Source: Chlorokybus atmophyticus (Eukaryota; Plantae; Mesostigma and Chlorokybus algae). From it: 64,000 bases of DNA. Shown here in pieces: positions 12,448 to 31,766 of the stretch. Each line of letters begins with the position of its first letter. Within the stretch, counting starts at the first letter, position 1. The DNA is taken from contig RHPI01003116.1 of NCBI GenBank assembly GCA_009103225.1, positions 124,001 to 188,000 on the forward strand, read 5' to 3'. Under the pieces are notes generated by a model. It did no database searches, was not told the DNA's origin, and saw only the letters and a program-made list of their open reading frames with translations. Position numbers and translations under genes: made by a program.

Positions 12448-18274
<5,827 letters not shown>

Positions 18275-18959: not shown

Positions 18960-19138
18960 GCATGTTGAAGCTCTCCAATTAATGCTTTAACGATGAATTC
19001 GACCTAGCTGCGGTCGAATTCATCGCTAAAGCTGTTAATCACCTGCAATGCCATTGAACCCTTTATATATGAGGCATTACCGGCTTTGCTACAAAGCCTT
19101 AAGTGGTTCTTGAAGTTGTCAATGTCACAAAGGATTTG

Positions 19139-19169
<31 letters not shown>

Positions 19170-20005
19170 GTATATATATACATGTATATACATATATACT
19201 TGAGATAATACAACACGATTGTAAAGCATTAAATGATTACATGGCATATAAATGGCATATATCGTTGTGCTCCAAATTGTTCGTAACGAGCGCGGGAAAA
19301 ATATGCAATTTGTTTTTGGTCAAAACCCTACAAAATTATACATTTCAATGCATTTGCAATGGAATGCCTAGTTGCTGCCGCCGAGCAGGGGGGGTAAGGC
19401 TTTGTAAAGTGACCTTCCATAATTATTTATTTAATAAACAATCCGTGGCACTACGGTACATGCCATTGTAAATGTAACTCATAGATCGCAAGGTCATGTA
19501 ATGTTTTTTTGCAATATGATTGATTGGTATAGAGTAGACACATATTTCTCATGCATGCATTTTTTGCAGGCAGCTTTGATCGAGCTTTGCTTTAAGTAAA
19601 AAGACTCATTGCATAAAACACGCGGGGCGATAAAGATGACAGTAATACATAAAATCAAAATGTTGTAATATATATATATATAATCGTAAACTTCTCAACA
19701 CACGATTTCATGAACCTTAACCGACATATATGCTGCCCATTTACAACCTTATATGTCCCGAACGTACCTTTTTGTCTTAAGCTGAAGATTAAGCCTTATG
19801 CCACATCATCATGAACTACGGTGGTACTACGTCACAGCACTACCTTAGTAGTGGGTAATACCCACCACGATGTACACAACTTGGTGGTGAACATACATAC
19901 CTGTTATGGATGCAATGCCATTGAACCCTTTATATATGAGGCATTACCGGCTTTGCTACAAAGCCTTAAGTGGTTCTTGAAGTTGTCAATGTCACAAAGG
20001 ATTTG

Positions 20006-20053
<48 letters not shown>

Positions 20054-20880
20054 CATGTATATACATATATACTTGAGATAATACAACACGATTGTAAAGC
20101 ATTAAATGATTACATGGCATATAAATGGCATATATCGTTGTGCTCCAAATTGTTCGTAACGAGCGCGGGAAAAATATGCAATTTGTTTTTGGTCAAAACC
20201 CTACAAAATTATACATTTCAATGCATTTGCAATGGAATGCCTAGTTGCTGCCGCCGAGCAGGGGGGGTAAGGCTTTGTAAAGTGACCTTCCATAATTATT
20301 TATTTAATAAACAATCCGTGGCACTACGGTACATGCCATTGTAAATGTAACTCATAGATCGCAAGGTCATGTAATGTTTTTTTGCAATATGATTGATTGG
20401 TATAGAGTAGACACATATTTCTCATGCATGCATTTTTTGCAGGCAGCTTTGATCGAGCTTTGCTTTAAGTAAAAAGACTCATTGCATAAAACACGCGGGG
20501 CGATAAAGATGACAGTAATACATAAAATCAAAATGTTGTAATATATATATATATATAATCGTAAACTTCTCAACACACGATTTCATGAACCTTAACCGAC
20601 ATATATGCTGCCCATTTACAACCTTATATGTCCCGAACGTACCTTTTTGTCTTAAGCTGAAGATTAAGCCTTATGCCACATCATCATGAACTACGGTGGT
20701 ACTACGTCACAGCACTACCTTAGTAGTGGGTAATACCCACCACGATGTACACAACTTGGTGGTGAACATACATACCTGTTATGGATGCAATGCCATTGAA
20801 CCCTTTATATATGAGGCATTACCGGCTTTGCTACAAAGCCTTAAGTGGTTCTTGAAGTTGTCAATGTCACAAAGGATTTG

Positions 20881-20928
<48 letters not shown>

Positions 20929-22500
20929 CATGTATATACATATATACTTGAGATAATACAACACGATTGTAAAGCATTAAATGATTACATGGCATATAAA
21001 TGGCATATATCGTTGTGCTCCAAATTGTTCGTAACGAGCGCGGGAAAAATATGCAATTTGTTTTTGGTCAAAACCCTACAAAATTATACATTTCAATGCA
21101 TTTGCAATGGAATGCCTAGTTGCTGCCGCCGAGCAGGGGGGGTAAGGCTTTGTAAAGTGACCTTCCATAATTATTTATTTAATAAACAATCCGTGGCACT
21201 ACGGTACATGCCATTGTAAATGTAACTCATAGATCGCAAGGTCATGTAATGTTTTTTTGCAATATGATTGATTGGTATAGAGTAGACACATATTTCTCAT
21301 GCATGCATTTTTTGCAGGCAGCTTTGATCGAGCTTTGCTTTAAGTAAAAAGACTCATTGCATAAAACACGCGGGGCGATAAAGATGACAGTAATACATAA
21401 AATCAAAATGTTGTAATATATATATATATATAATCGTAAACTTCTCAACACACGATTTCATGAACCTTAACCGACATATATGCTGCCCATTTACAACCTT
21501 ATATGTCCCGAACGTACCTTTTTGTCTTAAGCTGAAGATTAAGCCTTATGCCACATCATCATGAACTACGGTGGTACTACGTCACAGCACTACCTTAGTA
21601 GTGGGTAATACCCACCACGATGTACACAACTTGGTGGTGAACATACATACCTGTTATGGAACGCCATTGAGGATTCCAAACATGTCCTTAAATTCAAGTC
21701 GCTAGCAGGCACTTCGTTTTGCGATAGCCTATCTAAGAATACAATCAGTTTATCAATCTTATGCTATACCATGATGTTGTGGTGACGTCATAAGTCGTTA
21801 AATTTATTGTGTTTTTGTAGTCGCTTAATATCATACTCGTGGTAATACAGCTCGCATGTGGGAGGGAGCTTTTTTGCGTCTTGAGGCTGCAGGCAAGGGT
21901 GTTGCAAGCTTCGACGTACAAAAGACTATTGAAATGCAGGCCCATAAGGGCGTGAACCCATTACAAAAGGCGCATGATAAGCTACCGTAGTGACGTCGCT
22001 TGAAAGTCAAGCACAACCAGTCTATTATTAACTTCTATGCATATTCCGTCAATGTGCTACAATTTGATTAACCCCAACATGACCTTGTCACAGATACAGG
22101 CGATGGACAAGTACTGGGCAACTTTGCCTGAGGACACAGTCAAGCAATCGACTTTCAAAAAGGGACTCGAGCATTTCACGCATGCCGCCCATGACTGTAC
22201 GAAGCGCACAATTGTGCATTACGACAACATGCATGCATAATCAACCTGGCACGGATGTCAGCTGTTGTTGGCAGTAACTGGCCCTCTGACTCGTCCACTC
22301 CCGTTGCGGAAACTGGCACTGGCAAAAACAATATCAAGCGCGGCCGCCTTGATGTAGCAAAGGCAAGCTGCCCTTTAACAAACAGTAGTTGAAAAAACTT
22401 GCAACCAGCACCCAGGAGGCACCGTGCCGCTGAGGACTTCTAGCTTCACAGCTGAAATTCGTCTGAAGTGCGAGGAGAAAGCCACCGTGTGGCGAACTAC
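18960..22500 (+). pseudogene. Decayed coding-like sequence of unknown family (degenerate transposon, viral or host gene) in an AT-rich island
   Basis: Protein-like frames broken by scattered stops: FNDEFDLAAVEFIAKAVNHLQCH*TLYI*GITGFATKP*VVLEVVNVTKD; IMNYGGTTSQHYLSSG*YPPRCTQLGGEHTYLLWNAIEDSKHVLKFKS; YHTRGNTARMWEGAFLRLEAAGKGVASFDVQKTIEMQAHKGVNPLQKAHDKL; NLINPNMTLSQIQAMDKYWATLPEDTVKQSTFKKGLEHF. Intron-like GTAAGG..TTTTGCAG signals are also present. Confidence 0.45.
19044..21660. repeat. Tandem triplication of an 867/875/875 bp unit
   Basis: Units start at 19044, 19911 and 20786 (TGCAATGCCATTGAACCC). Copies differ mainly in (TA)n length. The junction has microhomology CAATGCCATTGA / AACGCCATTGA (~21660). 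Confidence 0.95.
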
Positions 22501-25500: not shown

Positions 25501-25647
25501 CATGCATTGCCTCACTGTCATCGTTAGGTTATGCGTCTTCAAACATTGCTTGATGTCAATGACAATAATCTTACCTAGATTGCAAATACAGCTTATTGTT
25601 TTTTTCCACCTATGCATATATACCATCTAAGCGGGGTTTGATGTACA

Positions 25648-28600
25648 CTACAATGTGGCGGGAGTCTCCGCCCTTATGTCACCACCAATCAAATACCTAA
25701 AGTTCCAATCATAGGTTGCGCTGGCGTAGCTACGGGATGGCCGCTTGCCACACGCCGCGACACGCCGCATGAGCATCTCATTCCCTTCCGCCGGCAGCTT
25801 TGAAGCCACCCACTCCAAAAGGCTGCGCGCATCATGGGAGAAATCCCGCGCGTACCACCCTAACACCTGCATGTCATAAGTTCAAACTATGCACTCAAAT
25901 ACGTGCGAATTGGTACACACATGCACATATGTGTATGTGTTGGTACAGGGTGCACGCGTGTGTCCACCTTGGGCAAGATGATCTTCTTGTGCTGGAAGCC
26001 AACAGCTGCGAGCAGGTACTCTCGTGTAGCAGTCTCAAGCTCTTCTCGAATGCTAGCAGCTTGATACACGCGCAACTGCCCACAGTTGTATCATGTCAAC
26101 ACCATACTAACCACAGGCAATGCTGATTAACGTGGGGCAATGCCATACCAGAGGCCCGCTGACTGCTGCAGTAGCCAATGCAAAGCTCACAAGCGGCTCA
26201 GGCCGCTCCAACATGGCCACCGTGCGGGGATCCTTGGGTCTGCATTGTTATATGCATAAGCTGACTGACTGTACACAGACAGCACAAAAGTATTGGCTCC
26301 GCATCTAATTACCTGAACCTATGGACAGGGAGTAAGCCTGCCAACACAGGCCGATGGGACTCGCCTCGTAACACTGCATGTTCAATGTCAAGCGCAGAAA
26401 ACGTCATCTTATCAATGGTATACGCTGCTCGCTTCATCAGAGATATGCGCTTGATGATGGTCTTGGGAACGCCCTGAGGTAAACAACCATACATTGAGGA
26501 AGGCACATGGTTGTAGCTATACATAACACGAAGGTAAGCATGCCTGGGCATAAGCCACATGACAGCAATGCAAGTGGCATGGCGCACGCATCGGATGCGT
26601 GTGGGAGCTTACCATAACGAGGCATGCGTGCATGAGCAAAGCATTGTACACGTTGAGCCAGAAACACAGCTTCTGGTTGTGAGATAGCGCTGTCAGCTTC
26701 ACATGCTCCAATTGTGCCGCTGTCTGTTTGTGAACACAAGCTGTTATGCAACAGTTACCACAGACTGGACGCTATCCAACACATAATAGCATGCAAACAC
26801 CGACATGCCTGCATGTACAGGGAGTACTTGTTGATTTTCTGCAGTTCACGTATGTTGGTTCGCAGCTGCGTGACTTCCTCGCAGCTTTCGTAGAGGGAAC
26901 GCACATCCTCCGACCATAACAAACATCTGCAAGTAGACCACATGTCAGAGGGCACGCATTCCAAATATAAATCACAGACATATGCATTCACATTCACAAG
27001 CACTGACTTGTCGCCACGAGTCCCGTACAAATCCGGCCGACTACTACGCTGTGTACTGTTGTTGTGTCGAACAACAACATCCACAACATCTCGATACAAC
27101 TCGACCATGCGCCGCACAAGCTCTGCTGACATCTCGCAAGCGTCCGACACTGGCAGTTCTGGCAGCTCGCTTGCACGTGCCGCCGCCAGGCCATCAACAG
27201 CCTGCCACAAATGCGCACGTGTGCCTGAGCTACCAGTACACTACTGACACTACTACGGGGGGCTATCAAGGCCAAGCTAACAAATCTGTGTGTGCTGTTG
27301 TTGTTGTGGTGGTGGTTGTGTGCTGCTGTGTGTTGCTCAAGATCGGGCCTTGTGACAACACACAACACAACTTTACAAACAACCACTCATATGCAAGAGG
27401 CCACCGAGTGGTCTGCATGAACCGAAGCCAACCACACTGTAACAAGAGCCACTCAAAAACTACACGTCCAGAAGATTAAGTACCTGCTGCAGAGTGTTGA
27501 GAATGTGCAGTTGTTTGGCATCATAGAAGGGGGCGTTCTGTGGCCGATTAAAGTCACACATGGCGAGCACCGCCTCCGCAACCTAAGACACATACACACA
27601 TGTGCGCACACACAACTGGTTTTCAGTCAAGTCAGCAACCTGCTTGCAAACTACATTGTTCTGACTGCGAGCGAGTATGACGTGAATAAGGTGAAGAGAT
27701 GTTGGGTTACGCAAAGTCCGCACGAAGGTTAAGGCATGCTATGGTGTTACCTGAATGTCCACTGGGGCTGTCGGGTCCACAATGTCGCCGGCATGCATCC
27801 GTCGCACTTCTTCGATCAACGCCGCGCGATGCACGGGAGAGTTCTGCACCGACAGTCCCTTCGCAGGGCTGACCGCAGTGTTCATGACAAGTTTGCGGGG
27901 CGTTGTTGCGGAGCCAGAAGCCCCTTTGTTGTGCTGTTGCTGCTGCTTGTGACTGCGCAGCCTTGGCGTGTTGTGCCACTGCCAGCCGGGCCTTTCAGAT
28001 ACGCACATTCCAACAACCCGAACAGAGCAACATCAGCCCCAATCAAGCAAACAATACACTCACCTGTTGGTTGCACGAGTCACAGAAAGCCTCTCCGCAT
28101 GTCACGCAGAACACTGATGCTAAAGTGTCACGCGAGTCGGCTTGGCATATGCCACATAGATAGCTTGCTCTGCGTACGACAAAGCTCAAGTTAGGAATGT
28201 ATCACCGGTACAAAAGCAGTATCAACCCAACAACAACAACCAAATTCACACTGCCATGCGAGCGCCTGTAGCCCNNNNNNNNNNNNNNNNNNNNNNNNNN
28301 NNNNNNNNNNNNNNNNNNNNNNNNNNNNNNNNNNNNNNNNNNNNNNNNNNNNNNNNNNNNNNNNNNNNNNNNNNNNNNNNNNNNNNNNNNNNNNNNNNNN
28401 NNNNNNNNNNNNNNNNNNNNNNNNNNNNNNNNNNNNNNNNNNNNNNNNNNNNNNNNNNNNNNNNNNNNNNNNNNNNNNNNNNNNNNNNNNNNNNNNNNNN
28501 NNNNTCCTCCCCGCCCCAACAACAACAATAACAACCGCAACCACCCGCTTTCTGCGTACCTTCCAGATGTTGAGAGTTTATCGGCTGCCATGGAAAGGAT

Positions 28601-31488
28601 GGACTGCGGGATGGCTGTGGAAGACCAGTGCATAGTTAGTCTCGACATAGGGCTTGCTATGGTCCAACAGAGCTGTTTGCCATCATGCACAACAAGTAGA
28701 GGCTGTGTCCGAGCGTGTGCACAATTGCGCTGGCACAAGACAAAATTCCGCTTACATTCATCATCAATCGCAGTGTCGGCAGCAGCCACACTGTCCAAAT
28801 CCTCCTCTTCAAAACCCCATTCCACCTGTGGTGGTGGTTGGCAGAGTTAATAATGGTAATAGTCATGATGATTTCGATGACGGTGATGTTGCTATTGCAC
28901 AGGCCAGGATAGATCAATGTTGCCACATGTCCAACCCACCCACCTCTGCCTCGTAGAAGCGAGGCGACTCGTCTTCCTCGTCCGAGTCAATACTGGTCTC
29001 TGAGCCCGCCATCTGTAAGCTCTGATCGTCGTCGACTCCAGTTACACAAGCATCCAAACCAGCAATCTGCCAGGTACAATCAGCTTCAAGAAAGGGTGCA
29101 AGCGAAGGAACACATGGCGATGGCGATGGCAATGGTGATGATGGTGATGATGCGCTGACCTGCTCGGGTGAAAGGTCAATCCATTCATCAAGGAGGCAGA
29201 CGCAGTTGCGGTGTGTCAAGAGGAACAGCTGTCAACAACATTGCATGCGTGATGTATTGCTACTGTCCACACCTATGCCTGCAGAGGTGACATGCATTTC
29301 AGCACAGGCATACCTCAGCCATGCTTGCAGCTACAAGCTTCTCAACCTTCGAGCTCACACCCCAATAACTGCACAAAGTGGCAATGAGGGCAGCCTCGGA
29401 GCGCGTCTGACGAAGCACAAACACAACAACCGCATCTACAACAGCAGCAACAACGACATACTTGCAGCTGGCATTGACTAGCTTGTATGTGGTCATGATC
29501 GGGTTAACGTGTTCCTGCCAGCCAGGTCGAAAGGGTCCGCGCCTACATTGCAAAGCTGCGTTAGAGCATGCTGCGCAAAGCAAGCCTCGCTGCACAACAC
29601 AATGATATGAACACCCAGCCAACATACCCCGTTTTCACACTCTTCACCAGTGTAGGATCAAGGTCCGGCGAGTAATCCTCTTTGGCAACCTGAAGCACAA
29701 AGCAGCTGAGCAGGTGTTCACATGCATGCGATGTACAACCATTGTTTGTCAACTGTAAGCAACCACCATGGCAACAACAATGGCGGTGTACTCTGCCTAC
29801 TTGCTAACCAGGTGCTCACAGATGCGGTCAAACAGCGCATGCTTGATAGCAAGGTGACTTGCACATCTATCCATTGATGGGTGAATTACAACATGCAAAA
29901 GCATGCTTCTGTTTACCTTTCCACAAACAATGTCAAGCACTCTCACTGTGCGTCGGAGCTGGTCTTCCTCAGTCAAACCCAATGCATTGGTCTCGGTCAC
30001 ATTGCCGTTCACGCTGATGGTGTGCACATCTATCCTCAACTGCCACAAACACCAAAGCATCAACCGGACTGAAAGACGCTGAAAGGCAGGACTGTTTACA
30101 AATGGTTCATGACATGATTCTACAACGCACAGCGTGCCTGTTTGAAGAAAGGGCACGTGATTGTTGTTCTTAAGTACGGGTATGTTGCCCAAGTCTTCTC
30201 ATCCAACACCAGCGCTGATGCAGGCGCCATCTTGGCAACCTGAAGCACTGAGCTTGTTGACAAAAACATCTGTGCAAAGGTTGCTGCAAGATACTGAACA
30301 CCTTACACAGTACTGTATTGCAGTTCACAACACAGACGTGTACGCACATGTGATGGTGCATTACCCATGCAGGAAGCCTTGAGCCGAGGCGGTAGAGTGT
30401 GTGCGTGAAGGTGCCAGCGCCATACGTTTCATGGTAGTATGGAGTGACAGACAGCACCTGTTGAGTGAAACCGCCACAACAAGATGTCACTGCTATAACT
30501 ATGTGGTTCTGCAGCGTATCTGGTTAAGTGCTGGCTAGCAGTCAATCACAAGATCAGTGGCATGTGCATGGCAAGCAACTGTCATGCTGGATGTTACATA
30601 ACCATATGAGACAAGGTGAGTGCAAAACAGTCCTCACATGTTGACACAGATAAACAACGTGAACAGAGCTGAAGTATTTGACTTTGGGTAAACAGCCTGC
30701 TTGGGATGAACATGCAGTACGATGTATGTCACGAGATAGTGCGCGTGTCCACAACGCAGGAACACGCATGCTGACCTCCCCGCCGCGGTTAAGCCGAAGG
30801 TTTTGCTCATTCGTCTTCCAGTTGGCATAGCGGTAGCCCCGCCGGAACTCCTCAACTGCATGCACACGCAGTTATTGCAACAGACATGCCGCTTTGCATG
30901 GAAGGCATGGTGTATGCCTAAGCTGTGGTGTGCTGTAAGCGCCCGCATTGTGTCAGTGGCAAAGCAACACGCACATGCATGGATGTCTTCAAGCAGCACA
31001 CACAGTTTCCTGTTACTTAGCTGAGCCAATGGCTTACACAGTGTTCAGGAACTGTTACGGCTTGACTCAGCTCAGGCTTCAGCTGCTGTCATGCTAAGTT
31101 CCAGCACAGCTTGACAAGCAAACCGTGCACAGCTAGTAAGTCTAGCATAGTAGGACTGCTTTATTGCTTAACAGCTAACAGTTGAGCCCCCTGAGCTTAA
31201 GCCAAGCACTAGCAGTGGTAGCGGATACTCTCCCTTATGAACAGGCCAACCACATTACTGTTGACTGACGCTGTCATCGCCACCCAAAAATTAAACAAGT
31301 GACAGGGCATATCAATGGTTCACAAAGCTCTACTTTGCCTACACACATCTCAACTTCGTACACACATAGCTAAGCCTGGAACCAATGCACTCATTCACAG
31401 ACCCACTATGTCCAGCTTGCAGCTACCCACCTGACAAAGGCAGGGGTATCCGGTACTCCTGCAGAAGGCCCCCTAAGGTCGCCACCAT
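25648..31488 (-). CDS. Multidomain protein: PITP (IP_trans/START-like) domain + B-box zinc finger + DUF547
   Basis: ATG 31488 MVATLGGLLQEYRIPLPLS|VEEFRRGYRYA..GGE|VLSVTPY..GTFTHTLYRLGSRLPAW|VAKMAPASALVLDEKTWATYPYLRTTITCPFFKQ|LRIDVHT..RTVRVLDI|..DPTLVKSVKTG|RGPFRPGW..MTTYKLV|YWGVSSKVEK|LFLLTHRNCVCLLDEWIDL (PITP). CGICQ..VFCVTCGEAFCDSCNQQ|WHNTPRLRSHK (B-box, 28169-27950). KLCFWLNVYNALLMHA, ALDIEHAVLR, EPLVSFALATAAVSGPL, LPK|VLGWYARDF..YDWNFRY (DUF547). Stop at 25648. Confidence 0.88.
28275..28504. other. Assembly gap (Ns); others at 10192, 15666, 38298-38480, 47747-47975 and 48837-48853
   Basis: N runs in the sequence. Confidence 0.99.
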
Positions 31489-31766
31489 GCTGAGCACGAC
31501 CACGTCGCCGCCGCCGAGGACGACGACGACGACGAAGGCATCAACGCTCCAAATGGTTTGAGAATAACTTAGAGGAATCCTTTGTTACGGAATAATAATT
31601 GCATTATACACGTATAAAAACAATCATGTTCTGTGTTTAACATGCCGGTTAAGTAACGTAGCACATCCTGCACGCTAGTTGCAATACTGACTGGGGCTGT
31701 AAGCAGTTAACAGGTTTTGTACAAAGCTCTAACTGCTACGTTGAACGCCCTGTTAACCAAGTTCGC

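Follow-up and report, generated by a model that had tools for sequence, protein, structure and literature searches.

Nir2/RdgB-alpha (PITPNM1) of animals is laid out as a phosphatidylinositol transfer protein (PITP) domain, an acidic tract carrying an FFAT motif (a pair of phenylalanines within an acidic stretch) immediately C-terminal to that domain, long linkers and targeting modules at the C-terminus. Descriptions of plant lipid signalling usually centre on PITPs of the Sec14 type, and START-like PITPs are treated as animal and protist proteins. Here we describe a gene of the alga Chlorokybus atmophyticus that lies in a 64,000-nt window of contig RHPI01003116.1 (positions 124,001 to 188,000; all coordinates below are those of the window). 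It is a single 21-exon gene on the minus strand with its coding sequence at 31488-25648, and it encodes, in this order, a PITP domain, an acidic linker, a B-box-like zinc finger and a DUF547 domain. The likeness to Nir2/RdgB-alpha lies in a PITP domain with, directly after it, acidic sequence that includes two aromatic residues, and then linkers and C-terminal modules, suggesting a similar logic of tethered transfer. In contrast, the C-terminal modules of Nir2/RdgB-alpha are DDHD and LNS2, whereas the Chlorokybus family has DUF547 and the B-box-like finger there. In this family other residues take the places of K61 and N90 in the PITP pocket, and position 4 of the motif is Glu while position 7 is not acidic. 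A Pfam scan found no DDHD or LNS2 in the public Chlorokybus model (P0001) or in family members from Spirogloea (P0003), Closterium (P0005 and P0006) and Physcomitrium patens (P0010), and the true RdgB relatives P0024 and P0026 carry PF02862, PF24694 and PF24695. By analogy, the protein may sit tethered at a membrane contact site and transfer or sense lipids there, on the plan of animal Nir2/RdgB-alpha, a reading to which we assign a probability of about 0.45.

One spliced transcript across the assembly gap

Exon borders were set by three-frame translation and then by splice signals and phases. Residue numbers come from exon arithmetic only, and P0001 and orthologues were used in place of the joined 832-residue protein. 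The exons, all on the minus strand, lie at 31488-31431, 30855-30776, 30457-30365, 30239-30138, 30039-29917, 29689-29628 and 29542-29462 (E1-E7), at 29368-29314, 29228-28944, 28825-28756, 28614-28560, 28169-28064, 27978-27751 and 27582-27484 (E8-E14), and at 27201-27008, 26926-26809, 26723-26613, 26473-26313, 26239-26149, 26075-25968 and 25866-25648 (E15-E21). They total 2499 nt, or 832 codons and a stop in frame, and the coding region is supported by frames, splice signals and transcript joints. Nineteen donors are GT in the sequence, and GC donors stand at 30137 and 26808. The two GC-AG introns (30040-30137, donor GCACGC, joint 30039/30138; 26724-26808, donor GCATGT, joint 26723/26809) are supported by splice signals and by CT..GC ends in four of four RNA runs, and GC-AG is used in two of the 20 introns of the gene.

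Contigs from four small sequencing runs of two studies (X1-X4) were placed on positions 25570-31560. The runs contain roughly the exonic share of sequence words, and in their contigs the listed introns are all crossed with CT..AC ends, equivalent to GT..AG on the minus strand, except for the two introns with CT..GC ends. Since the introns are skipped with splice-type ends, the runs represent spliced RNA. Joints were seen in contigs for intron lengths of 575, 318, 125, 98, 227, 85, 93 and 85 nt, with further joints for lengths of 118, 85, 85, 139, 73, 73 and 101 nt, and contigs cover the locus from ~25531 to 31519. X3 and X4 come from diverged relatives that share the organism code, with unchanged junctions; the relatives among the transcript contigs are 1-10% diverged.

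A run of N (28275-28504) interrupts the assembly inside intron 11 (28559-28170). Record 3 of X1 is a contig of 1435 nt with zero differences from the window that runs from E14 through E13, E12, E11 and E10 on to E1. Record position 327 corresponds to 27978 and record position 555 to 28940, and the 227 nt between them equal exactly the sum of E12 (106 nt), E11 (55 nt) and part of E10 (66 nt). The exact sum means that E11 is joined straight to E12, with no sequence from the N gap in the mRNA; this X1 joint, 28560/28169, follows from coordinate arithmetic and is not among the joints listed. In X4, the relative that is 5-10% diverged, the joint spanning the gap is listed explicitly, from 28159 to 28563. 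Read depth is zero in the bin 28170-28369 beside the gap in all four runs. In the other direction, record 4 of X2 (1204 nt) joins E13 and E14 to E16-E21 and the 3' untranslated region. Together, X1 record 3, the X4 joint and X2 record 4 place all exons in one transcription unit. An exon, stop or poly(A) site hidden in the gap and used in the transcript was also considered, and is ruled out by the X1 contig arithmetic.

The gap lies exactly between the two halves of the gene, and a contig running over two genes does not by itself prove a single transcript; two neighbouring genes, one for the PITP and one for a B-box-DUF547 protein, might have been wrongly merged. The evidence contradicts this, and we consider it highly improbable: in the contigs, 28560/28169 is no mere adjacency but a GT-AG splice with compatible phases, the contig arithmetic leaves zero extra sequence, and the same fusion is found in orthologues of nine other genera. 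The initial annotation had read the PITP domain, acidic linker, B-box and DUF547 as one frame and had named RNA across the 29228-26500 exons as the way to check it. The contigs bear out one reading frame in one spliced transcript; they span the gap, and no transcript end was seen in it. The junctions 28944/28825, 28560/28169, 28064/27978, 27751/27582 and 27484/27201 given there are all correct by splice signals and phases. The stretch 28825-28560 had also been given as one block; its outer borders hold, but it contains an in-frame intron of 141 nt (28755-28615), which by X1 contig arithmetic is spliced out of the RNA.

Upstream of the main start at 31488, an ATG at 31541 lies out of frame and opens a short Ser-rich frame (31541-31473, minus strand) that overlaps that start. 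The 5' transcript contig end, at ~31519, falls inside a (GAC)n-like repeat and short of the upstream ATG. Unrelated contigs in X1, X2 and X4 match only 31503-31537, a 35-nt acidic-repeat stretch, and are loose at both ends; such contigs do not belong to the gene, and match it by chance through coding repeats of the (GAC)n type.

Exon 15 (27201-27008, 194 nt, minus strand) appears to be a cassette exon, judging from the transcript contigs and from conservation. It encodes a helix, E-L-S-x-E-L-V-R...L-Y, that is conserved in all orthologues by alignment and tblastn. In X2 record 4, E14 runs straight into E16. By contrast, E15 in X1 and X3 is found in a separate 254-nt contig (30 + 194 + 30) with depth below that of its neighbours, and the flanking contigs stop exactly at the E14 and E16 borders. 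A separate contig with exact flanking ends is what a graph bubble leaves in an assembly, and it points to alternative splicing. Because E15 is 194 nt long, skipping it shifts the frame and brings a stop inside E16; read from the sequence, the skipped product has ~525 residues and lacks DUF547. Since the helix is conserved in all orthologues, the inclusion form is the conserved protein. The skipped mRNA might instead be the main product, encoding a ~525-residue PITP-FFAT-like-B-box protein, with the DUF547 exons as largely untranslated 3' sequence or the mRNA as a target of nonsense-mediated decay. The only X2 contig in this region, which joins E14 to E16, and the low depth of the E15 contig in X1 and X3 are consistent with this. 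The E15 helix in all orthologues and the clear conservation of the DUF547 exons at the protein level argue against it, and contig graphs may lose one arm of a bubble, so the absence of E15 from X2 is weak evidence; we regard a predominantly skipped mRNA as improbable.

PITP domain, FFAT-like motif and zinc finger

The PITP domain (IP_trans, START-like; 31488-29157, minus strand) extends from E1 to the first 24 codons of E9, as determined by Pfam, alignment and tblastn. The Pfam IP_trans matches are collinear (42-71 in E3, 73-104 in E4, 108-146 in E5, 169-192 in E7 and 214-237 in E9), and tblastn with an orthologue is likewise collinear over the PITP exons. P0001 scores 166.8 bits against IP_trans (PF02121), above the gathering threshold of 21.3 bits. 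For the Physcomitrium orthologue P0010 the score is 260.5 bits (profile positions 2-241), and its residues 1-256 align with rat PITP-alpha (1t27) with an E value of 3e-51.

The pocket was compared through the alignment to rat PITP-alpha. T59, K61, E86 and N90 are what we take to be the residues that contact the inositol head group in PI-transferring PITPs, as in the PITP-alpha structures. The equivalents of T59 and E86 are retained in Chlorokybus and throughout the family. The K61 equivalent is Thr in Chlorokybus and Ser in the other members, and the N90 equivalent is Ala in Chlorokybus and Met, Val or Ile elsewhere. The full four-residue inositol pocket is absent, with two of the four residues replaced family-wide, which concerns canonical phosphatidylinositol binding and not the fold. 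In addition, the C95 equivalent is hydrophobic across the family (Leu in Chlorokybus), and Tyr replaces the first of the paired Trp residues (WW), the W203 equivalent. From the alignment, the pocket replacements suggest altered head-group recognition. The description of this region in the initial annotation as a complete metazoan-type PITP holds for the fold and fails for the pocket, where the family-wide replacement of K61 and N90 departs from the canonical type. Soluble class I PITP-alpha/beta (PDB 1t27, 1uw5, 2a1l) share with the Chlorokybus protein T59, E86 and the C-terminal helix region; the latter differs in being multidomain and in the changes at K61, N90, C95 and W203. A separate protein of Klebsormidium nitens (P0023, 517 residues) is a canonical START-like PITP with T-x-K and E-x3-N intact and a long disordered tail, showing that canonical PITPs are also present in streptophyte algae, apart from the fusion family.

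Directly C-terminal to the PITP domain, an acidic Ser/Asp/Glu tract is followed by the FFAT-like core R-F-Y-E-A-E-V (29003-28823, minus strand), a feature recognised by its conservation. The tract occupies 29003-28962 and the core 28961-28944 in E9 and 28825-28823 in E10, across the E9/E10 junction. In the family, the core reads [E/V/R]-[F/Y]-[F/Y]-E-A-[E/T/Q]-[M/V/A]-[E/Q]-[W/L] after a tract of Asp, Glu and Ser. The linker is otherwise variable, and the motif forms an island of conservation, with an identity of ~0.8 compared to ~0.35 in its flanks. Its E-A pair is invariant in 15 orthologue rows, and a metagenome locus described below has E-F-Y-E-A-L-M. The FFAT consensus is E(F/Y)(F/Y)DAxE with an acidic flank, and plant VAPs bind FFAT motifs (PMC11631713). 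Compared by eye with this consensus, whose upstream flank may be acidic or phosphorylatable, the flank is acidic or Ser-rich. Positions 2, 3 and 5 fit throughout the family, with one exception, a Thr at position 5 in the paralogue P0016. At position 1, Chlorokybus has Arg and Closterium P0005 has Val, and all other members have Glu. An ATG8-interacting motif was considered for this acidic/aromatic island and rejected, as no W/F/Y-x-x-L/I/V pattern is conserved by eye. The suggestion in the initial annotation of a membrane-contact system is strengthened by this conserved motif, which it had missed; the function itself remains inferential.

The B-box-like zinc finger (28156-27949, minus strand; Pfam and alignments) is of the two-zinc kind and is split by intron 12. 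Its first part, C-x2-C-x12-C-x2-C-x4-C-x2-C, lies in E12 (28156-28064) and its second, x4-H-x7-H, in E13 (27978-27949). The eight zinc ligands are invariant in 15 sequences (alignments A1 and A3). Type 1 B-boxes have the spacing C-x2-C-x7-12-C-x2-C-x4-C-x2-C/H-x3-6-H-x2-8-H, and the Chlorokybus ligands fit this pattern. In Pfam, E12 matches ANCHR-like_BBOX (E 4.5e-5), zf-B_box and other cross-brace fingers. The ANCHR-like model (PF22586) scores 26.7 bits in P0001 and 26.4 bits in P0010, just under the curated cut-off of 27, and PF00643 scores 22.9 bits against a cut-off of 24.1. The ANCHR (ZFYVE19)-like B-box is the best-scoring finger model and shares a cross-brace with eight Cys/His ligands; in contrast to ANCHR, the Chlorokybus protein has no FYVE or MIM domain.

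DUF547 and the distribution of the family

The C-terminal conserved domain is encoded by E17-E21 (26723-25651, minus strand) and is supported by Pfam, alignment and AlphaFold2 (AF2). The Pfam DUF547 core spans ~26693-26013, and a conserved extension continues to an end reading Y-D-W-x-F-R-Y-L, giving a domain of ~270 residues that exceeds the 125-position Pfam core. Profile matches are collinear (2-26 in E17, 30-66 in E18, 76-103 in E19 and 105-125 in E20), and P0001 scores 117.1 bits against DUF547 (PF04784) over profile positions 2-125, above the gathering threshold of 27. Upstream of the domain, the spacer that separates it from the finger is poorly conserved and probably disordered, with one conserved helix. 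An alignment of 29 sequences (A2) contains invariant polar residues N, Y, E, R, S and K. The AF2 model of the domain from the Physcomitrium orthologue has a predicted local distance difference test score (pLDDT) of 79 and a predicted template modelling score (pTM) of 0.81. It has no convincing solved relative in Foldseek against the PDB (best E 1.7) or in a wide VIA-align search (best Z 4.0), which does not prove that the fold is new. In the ESM Atlas, the domain matches only other DUF547 proteins, fused to the MIP1 zipper, glutaredoxin, DEP or RGS, and a feature search there with P0010 gave no usable match. DUF547 is likewise present in a PTEN of Entamoeba. The class IV glutaredoxins (GRX-DEP-DUF547) and the RGS-, DEP- and PTEN-DUF547 proteins resemble the Chlorokybus protein in having DUF547 C-terminal to a membrane-proximal or signalling domain, but their N-terminal modules are others, and none has a PITP or B-box.

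These partners bear on a different reading, in which the protein is a lipid-regulated signalling scaffold or enzyme: the PITP domain would sense a lipid and control the activity or partner of DUF547, and the motif would serve a partner other than VAP. The family-wide replacement of K61 and N90, invariant polar residues in DUF547 that could form a catalytic or ligand site, and the signalling nature of the other DUF547 partners (DEP, RGS, glutaredoxin, PTEN) are consistent with this. However, neither structure search returned a fold relative pointing to an enzyme, and in position and composition the motif is closer to FFAT than to the other short motifs checked by eye. We consider a scaffold or enzyme possible but on the unlikely side.

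When the DUF547 end was used as a query, the fusion proteins were followed, at 37-43% identity, by Lzipper-MIP1+DUF547 proteins from Spirogloea, from ferns and from angiosperms. The plant members of this group (Arabidopsis AT2G23700, 'UCHIGAWA', and proteins of Populus, Salix and Adiantum) share the ~270-residue domain at 37-43% identity and are its nearest relatives outside the fusion family. They differ in carrying an N-terminal leucine zipper and no PITP or B-box, and they occur in vascular plants, in which the searches found no fusion protein. AT2G23700 is associated with the plasma membrane in a polar manner and without a transmembrane helix (bioRxiv 10.64898/2026.08.17.745151). The label 'ternary complex factor MIP1' on these nearest outside relatives, together with the B-box-like finger and the annotation of B-box proteins as transcription-associated, would also suit a nuclear or transcription-related factor that couples a lipid ligand to gene regulation. 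This appears to us a long shot. The label is an annotation and not a tested function, the sole localised relative found, AT2G23700, is at the plasma membrane, the best finger match is the B-box of ANCHR, a membrane-trafficking protein, rather than the plant BBX type, and no DNA-binding domain was found.

To survey the family, the 53 residues of E18 were used in a HMMER search of the whole library, which returned 11 proteins and cannot bound the family distribution. P0001 (786 residues; EukProt/JGI Chlat1 Chrsp77S07688, Chlorokybus atmophyticus) is the public model of this locus and is 100% identical over E18. Compared to the RNA-supported exons, it has both GC-AG introns wrong, with sequence missing, retains the E7/E8 intron and drops part of E9; our exons correct it at the two GC-AG introns. 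The same GC-AG problem may affect other gene models of the Chlorokybus genome. Pfam IP_trans, ANCHR-like B-box and DUF547 occur together in P0001, P0003, P0005, P0006 and P0010, the last of which is labelled 'uncharacterized protein' in RefSeq. Word searches with P0010 add Ceratodon, Sphagnum, Marchantia (MPTK2_7g02200), Calypogeia, Riccia and another Closterium, all with the same precomputed set PF02121+PF22586+PF04784 and labelled hypothetical or uncharacterised. MPTK2_7g02200 was the only Marchantia orthologue returned, whereas several gene models exist in Physcomitrium. A profile word search with alignment A1, in which 8000 candidates were scored, returned only P0001 and two animal PITPs. 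Within reach of the HMMER and word searches, no vascular-plant protein with both PF02121 and PF04784 was found.

A further member, with motif, finger and DUF547 exons, is carried by a 91-kb metagenome contig (L001; JGI 3300060284, Ga0590114_0001400). At L001:1-13600, this streptophyte-like uncultured organism has a member that spans more than 13 kb, with long introns and with the PITP exons upstream of the examined stretch. A prokaryotic gene caller had split it into many 'hypothetical proteins'.

Judged from these sequences, the proteins form an uncharacterised streptophyte family present in Chlorokybus, Zygnematophyceae, mosses and liverworts. The initial annotation had not recognised the architecture, had proposed a search for it across algal proteomes and had placed it in a green-algal system. 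The search returns the same three-domain set across algae and bryophytes, with the finger as PF22586, and the family is streptophyte, reaching mosses and liverworts rather than being confined to algae. No paper on a PITP-B-box-DUF547 architecture was found in the paper library searched (queries on DUF547 with PITP, Pfam accessions, and bryophyte or streptophyte PITP), in line with its being unrecognised, but it is not new to databases, in which P0001 and hypothetical orthologues are deposited. The sequence itself is not new, since the architecture is in public protein sets and the locus had already been modelled. What is new is the RNA proof across the gap, the corrected exons, the apparent cassette exon, the FFAT-like motif, the pocket changes and the distribution.

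This distribution means that a START-like PITP has been retained from Chlorokybus to mosses and liverworts, across the deepest streptophyte split, with the FFAT-like motif, the zinc finger and DUF547 as its constant fusion partners in this family. DUF547, a widespread domain without known function or solved fold, gains a testable context in a lipid carrier with a putative VAP-binding motif. The Marchantia (MPTK2_7g02200) and Physcomitrium members make knock-outs, localisation and binding assays feasible.

Proposed function and neighbouring sequence

If the protein is a lipid carrier or sensor tethered where two membranes meet, its FFAT-like motif would attach it to VAP resident in the endoplasmic reticulum (VAP27 in plants). 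DUF547 would act at the membrane opposite, which is probably the plasma membrane, by contacting either that membrane or a signalling partner there, and the B-box would provide protein-protein contact or self-association. Since the pocket lacks the equivalents of Lys61 and Asn90, its cargo or binding mode would be non-canonical, and it may carry a lipid other than phosphatidylinositol or one bound otherwise than in the canonical way. Skipping of E15 would yield a truncated PITP-FFAT-B-box isoform without DUF547.

Several observations weigh against this proposal. The motif has Glu at position 4 in place of the Asp of FFAT, Met, Val or Ala at position 7 where FFAT is acidic, and, in Chlorokybus, Arg at position 1. 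The loss of K61 and N90 may mean that the PITP domain senses rather than transfers, or that it carries no lipid. Association with the plasma membrane is borrowed, by analogy, from a paralogous family that is 37-43% identical, and even there it may reside outside DUF547. The full-length AF2 model of P0010, built from 15 sequences, has a mean pLDDT of 48.7, and the domain arrangement is unreadable in it. Finally, the share of E15 inclusion cannot come from the contigs, which give no proportions of inclusion and skipping. A more specific version would make the protein the streptophyte counterpart of Nir2/RdgB, with VAP-docked transfer between the endoplasmic reticulum and the plasma membrane, DUF547 as a membrane-targeting or catalytic module of novel fold, a pocket for a lipid other than phosphatidylinositol and a switch at E15, ancestral to streptophytes and lost in vascular plants. 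We put this version forward as speculative and rather doubtful.

Outside the gene, the window contains two repeat features. At 19103-21219 on the plus strand, near-identical open reading frames, one of 122 and two identical ones of 124 residues, start at 19103, 19970 and 20845. They are spaced 867-875 nt apart and have a GC content of 0.33-0.37 compared to ~0.5 around them, constituting a long-period tandem repeat. Tandem Repeats Finder (TRF), limited to periods of up to 500, missed it for that reason. The second feature is a (CT)n microsatellite at 15129-15665, perfect over 268 copies, which stops at a gap of one N (15666).

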